From Podarcis melisellensis (Eukaryota): DNA of 64,000 nt. Positions 1 to 31,562 of this stretch are shown one piece after another (within the stretch, counting starts at the first letter, position 1; the number at the start of each line of letters is the position of its first letter). Below the pieces are notes generated by a model. The model had not been told where the DNA came from. It saw only the letters and a list, made by a program, of their open reading frames with translations, and ran no database searches. Location: assembly GCA_964234715.1 (NCBI GenBank), contig OZ174275.1; one strand, given 5' to 3'. Made by a program: the position numbers and the translations under genes.

Positions 1-31562
<31,562 letters not shown>

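Follow-up and report, generated by a model that had tools for sequence, protein, structure and literature searches.

A second, C-terminal RGD in squamate fibronectin and its possible use as an accessory integrin site

Fibronectin is the standard example of an RGD protein, and nearly all mapping of its integrin sites has been done in mammals. The window analysed here, a stretch of 64,000 nucleotides of lizard DNA, holds the 3' half of FN1, with many FN3 exons on the + strand upstream of type I module 11, and a preliminary description of this DNA had placed a second RGD at the extreme C-terminus of the encoded protein. Squamates comprise more than ten thousand species, and the locus raises the question of whether this second RGD is truly the end of the protein, how widely and for how long squamates have kept it, and whether integrins could use it. 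The features on which the answer depends are as follows.

11168-11176, + strand: the classical RGD, in fibronectin type III module 10 (first of the two), from the translation of 11150-11194
28656-28778, + strand: type I module 11 exon, whose translation, used as a query, matched full-length fibronectins at E of about 1e-77
29872-29976, + strand: first exon of type I module 12, whose translation matches the aligned orthologues (whole codons only; a split codon puts the exon start about 2 nt upstream)
30740-30850, + strand: penultimate coding exon (end of module 12 and linker), collinear with the orthologue tails, with a donor gt at 30851
31480-31487, + strand: tandem NAGNAG splice acceptor tccagcag, with a polypyrimidine tract before the last exon
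31488-31559, + strand: last coding exon, 24 codons, encoding the Cys-x3-Cys interchain knot and a tail of 16 residues; compared with 28 orthologue tails by alignment
31497-31511, + strand: the two cysteines (TGC at 31497-31499 and TGC at 31509-31511) of the C-P-I-E-C dimerisation motif, from the translation
31548-31559, + strand: codons CGA CGA GGA GAC, Arg-Arg-Gly-Asp, with homologous codons in four other squamate genomes
31551-31559, + strand: terminal RGD, from the codon reading
31560-31562, + strand: stop codon TAA, also TAA in all four other squamate loci
31563-32240, + strand: 3' untranslated region of about 680 nt with AATAAA at 32216-32221, delimited by the poly(A) signal and by conservation (3' end approximate)

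The stretch 31488-31562 is the true FN1 terminal coding exon, and the fibronectin C-terminus of this lizard ends in Arg-Gly-Asp. It translates into 24 residues, ending in N-R-R-G-D, followed directly by the stop; the C-P-I-E-C columns are invariant in 26 aligned orthologues; and the module order, strand, frame, splice signals, cysteine pair, short tail, stop and poly(A) signal are all those of an FN1 terminal exon. Therefore, the second RGD named in the preliminary description was confirmed (cga cga gga gac taa at 31548-31562, in addition to the III-10 RGD at 11168-11176), as was its assignment to the last exon, behind the interchain cysteines, with the exon series, the C-P-I-E-C motif and the 3' untranslated region in place. 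The exons of the window were handled singly, and whole-protein comparisons were made on public orthologues.

Two minor features of the gene model were observed. Use of the first AG of the NAGNAG acceptor (31480-31487) would add one Gln; the same tccagcag octamer is found at the last-intron acceptor of the gecko locus, and public squamate isoform models occur in pairs, one with and one without a Gln immediately ahead of the Asn-Val/Ile-His-Cys with which the last exon opens. In addition, a run of 188 N at 16845-17032 interrupts the 5' part of a + strand FN3 exon.

An RGD in one species is by itself unremarkable, because about 0.5 extra RGD is expected by chance in a fibronectin-sized protein of the composition of this window (GC 0.44, CpG observed/expected 0.26). 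The part that exceeds chance is the clade-wide retention of the motif at the terminus. When 217 long fibronectin-type proteins were collected by three word searches seeded with public orthologue tails and by cluster look-ups, a terminal RGD was found in 20 of 25 squamate taxa, this lizard included, and the taxa ending in RGD cover Gekkota, Scincoidea, Laterata, Anguimorpha, Iguania and Serpentes. The endings, with those of snakes and the tegu read at the protein level, were distributed as follows.

Geckos ending in RGD: Eublepharis, Euleptes, Gekko, Paroedura, Heteronotia
Cordylid ending in RGD: Hemicordylus, with one Arg fewer
Anguid ending in RGD: Elgaria
Iguanians ending in RGD: Pogona, Phrynocephalus, two Anolis, Sceloporus
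Snakes ending in RRGD: Python, Liasis, Crotalus tigris, Erythrolamprus
Snakes ending in QRGD: Thamnophis, Notechis, Pseudonaja
Tegu Salvator: ends in RGN, no RGD
Worm lizard Rhineura: ends in RRD, no RGD
Pituophis: ends in HGD, no RGD
Ahaetulla: ends in HED, no RGD
Crotalus adamanteus (single model): ends in RRD, no RGD

Each of the 79 long proteins with a terminal RGD carries a squamate-type tail, and the ending was seen in none of the 118 other long fibronectin-type proteins. The tail ends in -PRGK in tuatara and birds, in -PRGQ in the alligator, and in -RPGK or -RPGN in turtles (the N in a sea turtle); fishes have yet other endings. Mammalian tails, including one human-named match, end in -DSRE, so that the earlier statement that the human tail has no RGD was correct. 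The final residue is Asp in 24 of the 25 squamates and K, Q or N in other sauropsids. These protein sequences were already public, yet the terminal RGD apparently went unremarked: a search of the literature on the fibronectin C-terminal RGD of squamates and reptiles found no paper describing it, and a review of fibronectin evolution makes no mention of it (PMC4422808).

Several models in this collection have C-termini of other kinds. In some bird models (Gallus P0262, Struthio P0220 and others) the last exon is replaced by a short acidic alternative tail (...EED-x-YSDLE or ...RDDSELE), which is without both interchain cysteines, so that such a chain would be unable to dimerise; no squamate model of that type was seen. 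The Laticauda laticaudata models P0010 and P0347 run past the penultimate-exon donor into the intron (...NT-VSGHLP...) and do not contain the true last exon, and the absence of the tail from them is due to annotation and does not represent a biological loss. Several long fibronectin-like representatives (P0003, P0004, P0013) have C-termini without C-P-I-E-C.

At the DNA level, the end of the tail was compared with four other squamate loci, those of Rhineura, Hemicordylus, Paroedura and Pogona.

This window: AAT CGA CGA GGA GAC TAA
Rhineura: AAC CGA CGA (gap) GAT TAA
Hemicordylus: AAC CGA (gap) GGA GAT TAA
Paroedura: AAC CGA CGT GGA GAC TAA
Pogona: ATC CGG CGA GGA GAT TAA

The motif could in principle be the product of a base-call or assembly error, or lie in an exon that is not used, and the rattlesnake model that differs from that of its congener by one codon illustrates how a single model can be in error or reflect polymorphism. 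However, a base error is very unlikely, because independently assembled squamate genomes show the same ending: the same stop and homologous codons are present in the four other genomes (two of them with whole-codon deletions), and the same ending occurs in most of the annotated squamate species compared. As the splice acceptor and the frame are also intact, and the poly(A) signal and the conserved 3' untranslated region present, we regard an artefact of any of these kinds as extremely improbable.

The terminal RGD is thus very probably a squamate-wide trait, kept in most lizards and snakes. As judged from the aligned tails, it almost certainly originated along the stem lineage of squamates, when the last residue of an older sauropsid -P-R-G-K was replaced, because it is shared from geckos to snakes and absent in tuatara. 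Parsimony gives a single gain, after the split from tuatara and within a pre-existing Arg-Gly context, and the five residues behind the knot shifted simultaneously, from F-M-P-L/I-D to F-Y-P-L-H. On these comparisons the motif is as old as crown squamates, and its retention amounts to about 200 million years on published time-trees. The recent origin that the preliminary description had considered does not hold, since both RRGD and its CpG-containing Arg codons are shared from geckos to snakes and absent in tuatara.

The motif has also been lost independently at least three times (in the tegu, with RGN; in the worm lizard; and in colubrine snakes, with HGD and HED), or four times if the RRD model of the rattlesnake is right. 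In the worm lizard the loss is visible in the DNA, where the Gly codon is deleted. The position of this lizard is informative in this respect. Protein identity is highest to Rhineura and Salvator (no lacertid FN1 was among the matches listed), and the identity of the neighbouring intron and the 3' untranslated region is highest to Rhineura, with 0.54 for the intron as compared with 0.29-0.35 for the other three loci with DNA. From these similarities, the window appears to fall in or near Lacertoidea. Both of its nearest sampled relatives have lost the RGD, and this lizard therefore keeps the ancestral state. The alignment of squamate FN1 C-termini that had been proposed earlier shows the motif in 20 of 25 taxa, with the worm lizard and the tegu among those without it.

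The replacement of the last residue allows a reading in which what changed was the end group, through loss of the ancestral C-terminal Lys, gain of an acidic end, or an RR processing site, and the RGD was incidental. A C-terminal lysine is a classical target of plasminogen kringles and of basic carboxypeptidases, and the Lys end still found in tuatara, birds and turtles was replaced in squamates as the RGD appeared. The mammalian end is acidic and phosphorylated as well (-DSRE; PMC6619657), so an acidic terminus arose more than once. However, the Q of the alligator and the N of a sea turtle and of the tegu show that ends that are neither Lys nor acidic are tolerated, R-R is no furin site, with Arg missing at P4, and the sampled elapids and Thamnophis have Q-R and a cordylid a single R. 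We therefore consider a switch of the end group improbable as the explanation of the squamate tail.

Whether the tail has been held by selection was considered next to its immediate surroundings. Between this lizard and the gecko, cordylid or agamid, the adjacent intron is saturated, with an identity of 0.29-0.35, and the coding part retains 0.79-0.83 in the same three comparisons. Across the five genomes, the RRGD codons show synonymous differences only (CGA/CGG, CGA/CGT and GAC/GAT) apart from the two deletions of a whole codon; about seven replacements have occurred in the six codons of the linker that precedes them, and the fourteen codons before the linker show synonymous changes only. 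Since R-R-G-D was kept although the intron is saturated, there was time enough for it to change, and purifying selection acts on the tail. When the tail sites were counted by Fitch parsimony on a tree of the 25 squamate taxa (topology taken from squamate phylogenomics), the 16 sites took 28 steps, of which 5 fell in the three RGD sites as against 5.25 expected if steps were uniform, and none in the five residues directly after the knot. The constraint is not focused on the RGD, whose sites are conserved to the same degree as the tail overall. The selection suggested in the preliminary description therefore stands in its general form, as purifying selection supported by the saturated intron and the synonymous RRGD changes, but hardly as selection on the RGD in particular, given the tail-average rate of its sites and the several losses.

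The CpG-containing Arg codons persist despite the CpG observed/expected ratio of 0.26 in the window, and the codon comparison indicates that the two of them are ancestral, not new. Judging from the protein sequences, the Arg to Gln and Arg to His changes of snakes would be the expected products of CpG transitions. The RRGD codons (31548-31559 in the window; 88999-89008 in locus L001; 90632-90641 in locus L002) form a short GA-rich microrepeat. Whole codons have been deleted within it at least twice, once in the worm lizard (the Gly) and once in the cordylid (an Arg), and the rattlesnake RRD is maybe a third case; the repeat may explain these recurrent deletions.

The even spread of changes bears directly on a reading in which the RGD is a by-product: the tail would be constrained for another reason, such as dimer formation, secretion or a partner that reads Arg-Gly, and the change to Asp would have spelled RGD by accident, unused by cells. 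The Arg and Gly at positions -3 and -2 predate the motif, as in tuatara, birds and the alligator, and because they were present before it their conservation needs no integrin explanation. The RGD sites are conserved no better than the rest of the tail, the losses include the two nearest sampled relatives of this lizard, chance alone would supply about 0.5 RGD in a protein of this size, and an Asp with a free alpha-carboxylate is the weaker ligand (PMC5225454). On the other hand, Asp is last in all but one of the squamates while K, Q and N vary in other sauropsids, and exposed linear RGD peptides bind αv integrins with sub-micromolar IC50 even without a following residue, so that complete non-binding is less expected. 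An accidental RGD that cells ignore is about as probable as the accessory integrin site that we prefer below.

For integrins to use the RGD, the tail should be exposed. The interchain Cys pair of the fibronectin dimer is antiparallel. Both tails of a dimer would thus leave one small disulfide knot, and 16 extended residues would span about 5 nm. When the C-terminal 140 residues of the gecko orthologue were modelled as a monomer by AlphaFold2 with an alignment of 26 sequences, modules 11-12 folded with block-mean pLDDT of 77-89, and residues 92-140 of the segment, which run from the linker behind type I module 12 to the last residue, had pLDDT below 50; the model carries no information on the disulfide knot. 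The tail is thus predicted to be disordered. In human plasma fibronectin, the tail serine Ser2384, three residues from the end, is phosphorylated in the native protein, and it is the sole site that an added kinase reaches in the intact dimer, the authors placing it near the interchain disulfides (PMC6619657). Since a kinase reaches the human tail serine in the intact dimer, the homologous tail is probably exposed. The flexibility that had been surmised for the tails is thereby supported indirectly, by the gecko model and by the accessibility of the human tail.

Linear RGD peptides have been compared in a uniform solid-phase assay, in which all linear peptides tested were active, including the free-carboxyl RGD and GRGD (PMC5225454). 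Their IC50 values were 12-89 nM for αvβ3, 167-580 nM for αvβ5 and 34-335 nM for α5β1, and on αvβ3 the tripeptide RGD (89 nM) was sevenfold weaker than GRGDSPK (12.2 nM) (PMC5225454). The expectation of the preliminary description that affinity may suffer from a free C-terminal Asp is consistent with this difference, and by analogy with these peptides a lowered but not abolished affinity is reasonable for the terminal RGD. On αIIbβ3 no linear RGD peptide was active below 10 µM (PMC5225454), and this integrin would be the least likely partner of the tail.

The reading that we prefer, with a probability of roughly 0.42, is that the tail RGD is an accessory, weak, bivalent and dispensable integrin site. 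The RGD would stand at the end of a 16-residue, predicted-disordered tail just after the two interchain disulfides, so that each dimer would carry two terminal RGDs within a few nanometres, a distance that is in part inferred, and these would add a low-affinity bivalent site to the high-affinity III-10 RGD without replacing it. An accessory integrin site is the most likely role because free-carboxyl linear RGD peptides still bind αvβ3, αvβ5 and α5β1, and the site would be dispensable because several lineages have lost it. Several observations speak against this reading, namely the parsimony steps in the RGD sites, which are those expected of any tail site; the independent losses in the tegu, the worm lizard, colubrine snakes and maybe the rattlesnake; the poor activity of linear RGD peptides on αIIbβ3; and the Asp being the very last residue, unlike the penultimate Asp of fibrinogen γC. 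RGD-dependent binding of the tail in vitro is probable on the evidence of the peptides, and a selected physiological role is doubtful. It is less likely still that the tail is a selectively maintained second integrin site unique among vertebrates, in which two RGD-COOH ends at the dimer knot are exposed even in the compact plasma form.

The closest comparison is with the III-10 RGD itself, which is the same tripeptide in the same protein, is exposed as the tail RGD is predicted to be, and is present in every full-length squamate model. It differs in that it sits on a loop of a folded domain, is followed by Ser-Pro and is helped by the III-9 synergy site, whereas the tail RGD forms the last three residues of a predicted-disordered peptide, with a free Asp carboxylate and no synergy site, and is found in squamates only. 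Outside fibronectin, the natively disordered extreme C-terminus of fibrinogen γC is an integrin site, whose (R/A)-G-D-X end binds the RGD pocket and is of the RGD type in lamprey and frog and KQAGDV in human (PMC2518716). The likeness lies in a Gly-Asp on a C-terminal end that is disordered, as is predicted for squamates, in an adhesive plasma protein whose chains are disulfide-linked with two-fold symmetry. In fibrinogen γC, however, the Asp always stands one place before the end, a position reported to have stayed unchanged for about 450 My, and the ADMIDAS ion is reached by the carboxylate of the residue that follows it (PMC2518716). The squamate tail does not have this form of ending, as it is one residue shorter, so that its Asp is terminal and the stop follows directly. 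Picornavirus VP1 proteins (coxsackievirus A9, parechovirus 1) also bind αv integrins through an RGD on a flexible C-terminal extension, in which several residues follow the Asp, and they belong to a viral capsid, not a matrix protein.

An accessory integrin site of fibronectin outside III-10 has a precedent in isoDGR, a second, RGD-independent αv-integrin site that forms from Asn-Gly-Arg in type I module 5. That site depends on chemical deamidation, belongs to the N-terminal assembly domain and occurs across vertebrates, in contrast to the tail RGD, which is genetically encoded and lineage-specific. A motif of another kind at free C-termini is the neuropilin-binding CendR motif, R/K-x-x-R/K; it is not present here, since the terminal residue is Asp and a basic end would arise only by removal of Gly-Asp, of which there was no sign. 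A furin site at R-R was likewise ruled out for want of an Arg at P4. The study of human plasma fibronectin, in which the isoDGR site is also mentioned, describes mammalian tail phosphorylation at an S-x-E site by Fam20C (PMC6619657). The phospho-Ser2384 tail comprises the homologous last residues after the interchain disulfides, accessible in the native dimer, but the mammalian end is acidic and phosphorylated, whereas the squamate end is without Ser and spells RRGD.

A second encoded RGD, kept across most squamates and placed where two chains join, amounts to a natural experiment on whether integrins can use a terminal RGD-COOH as a ligand, whether the pairing of weak sites matters, and what the C-terminal tail is for. 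The lineages that lost it, the tegu, the worm lizard and colubrine snakes, are built-in controls, and would be natural knock-outs if the site is selected. If the tail is indeed such a selectively maintained site, squamate fibronectin would be a constitutive bivalent ligand of αv integrins and α5β1, with effects on the adhesion of thrombocytes, on matrix assembly, or on the repair of wounds and regeneration. If the tail RGD has no function, it would be a caution that an exposed RGD can persist for hundreds of millions of years without an integrin role.

Beyond the stop codon, the distal part of the 3' untranslated region (32051-32240, its last 190 nt or so) is 0.75-0.86 identical to that of other squamates, and identity falls to 0.09-0.45 beyond about 32240. 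In this respect 32051-32240 resembles a strongly conserved regulatory block of a 3' untranslated region.
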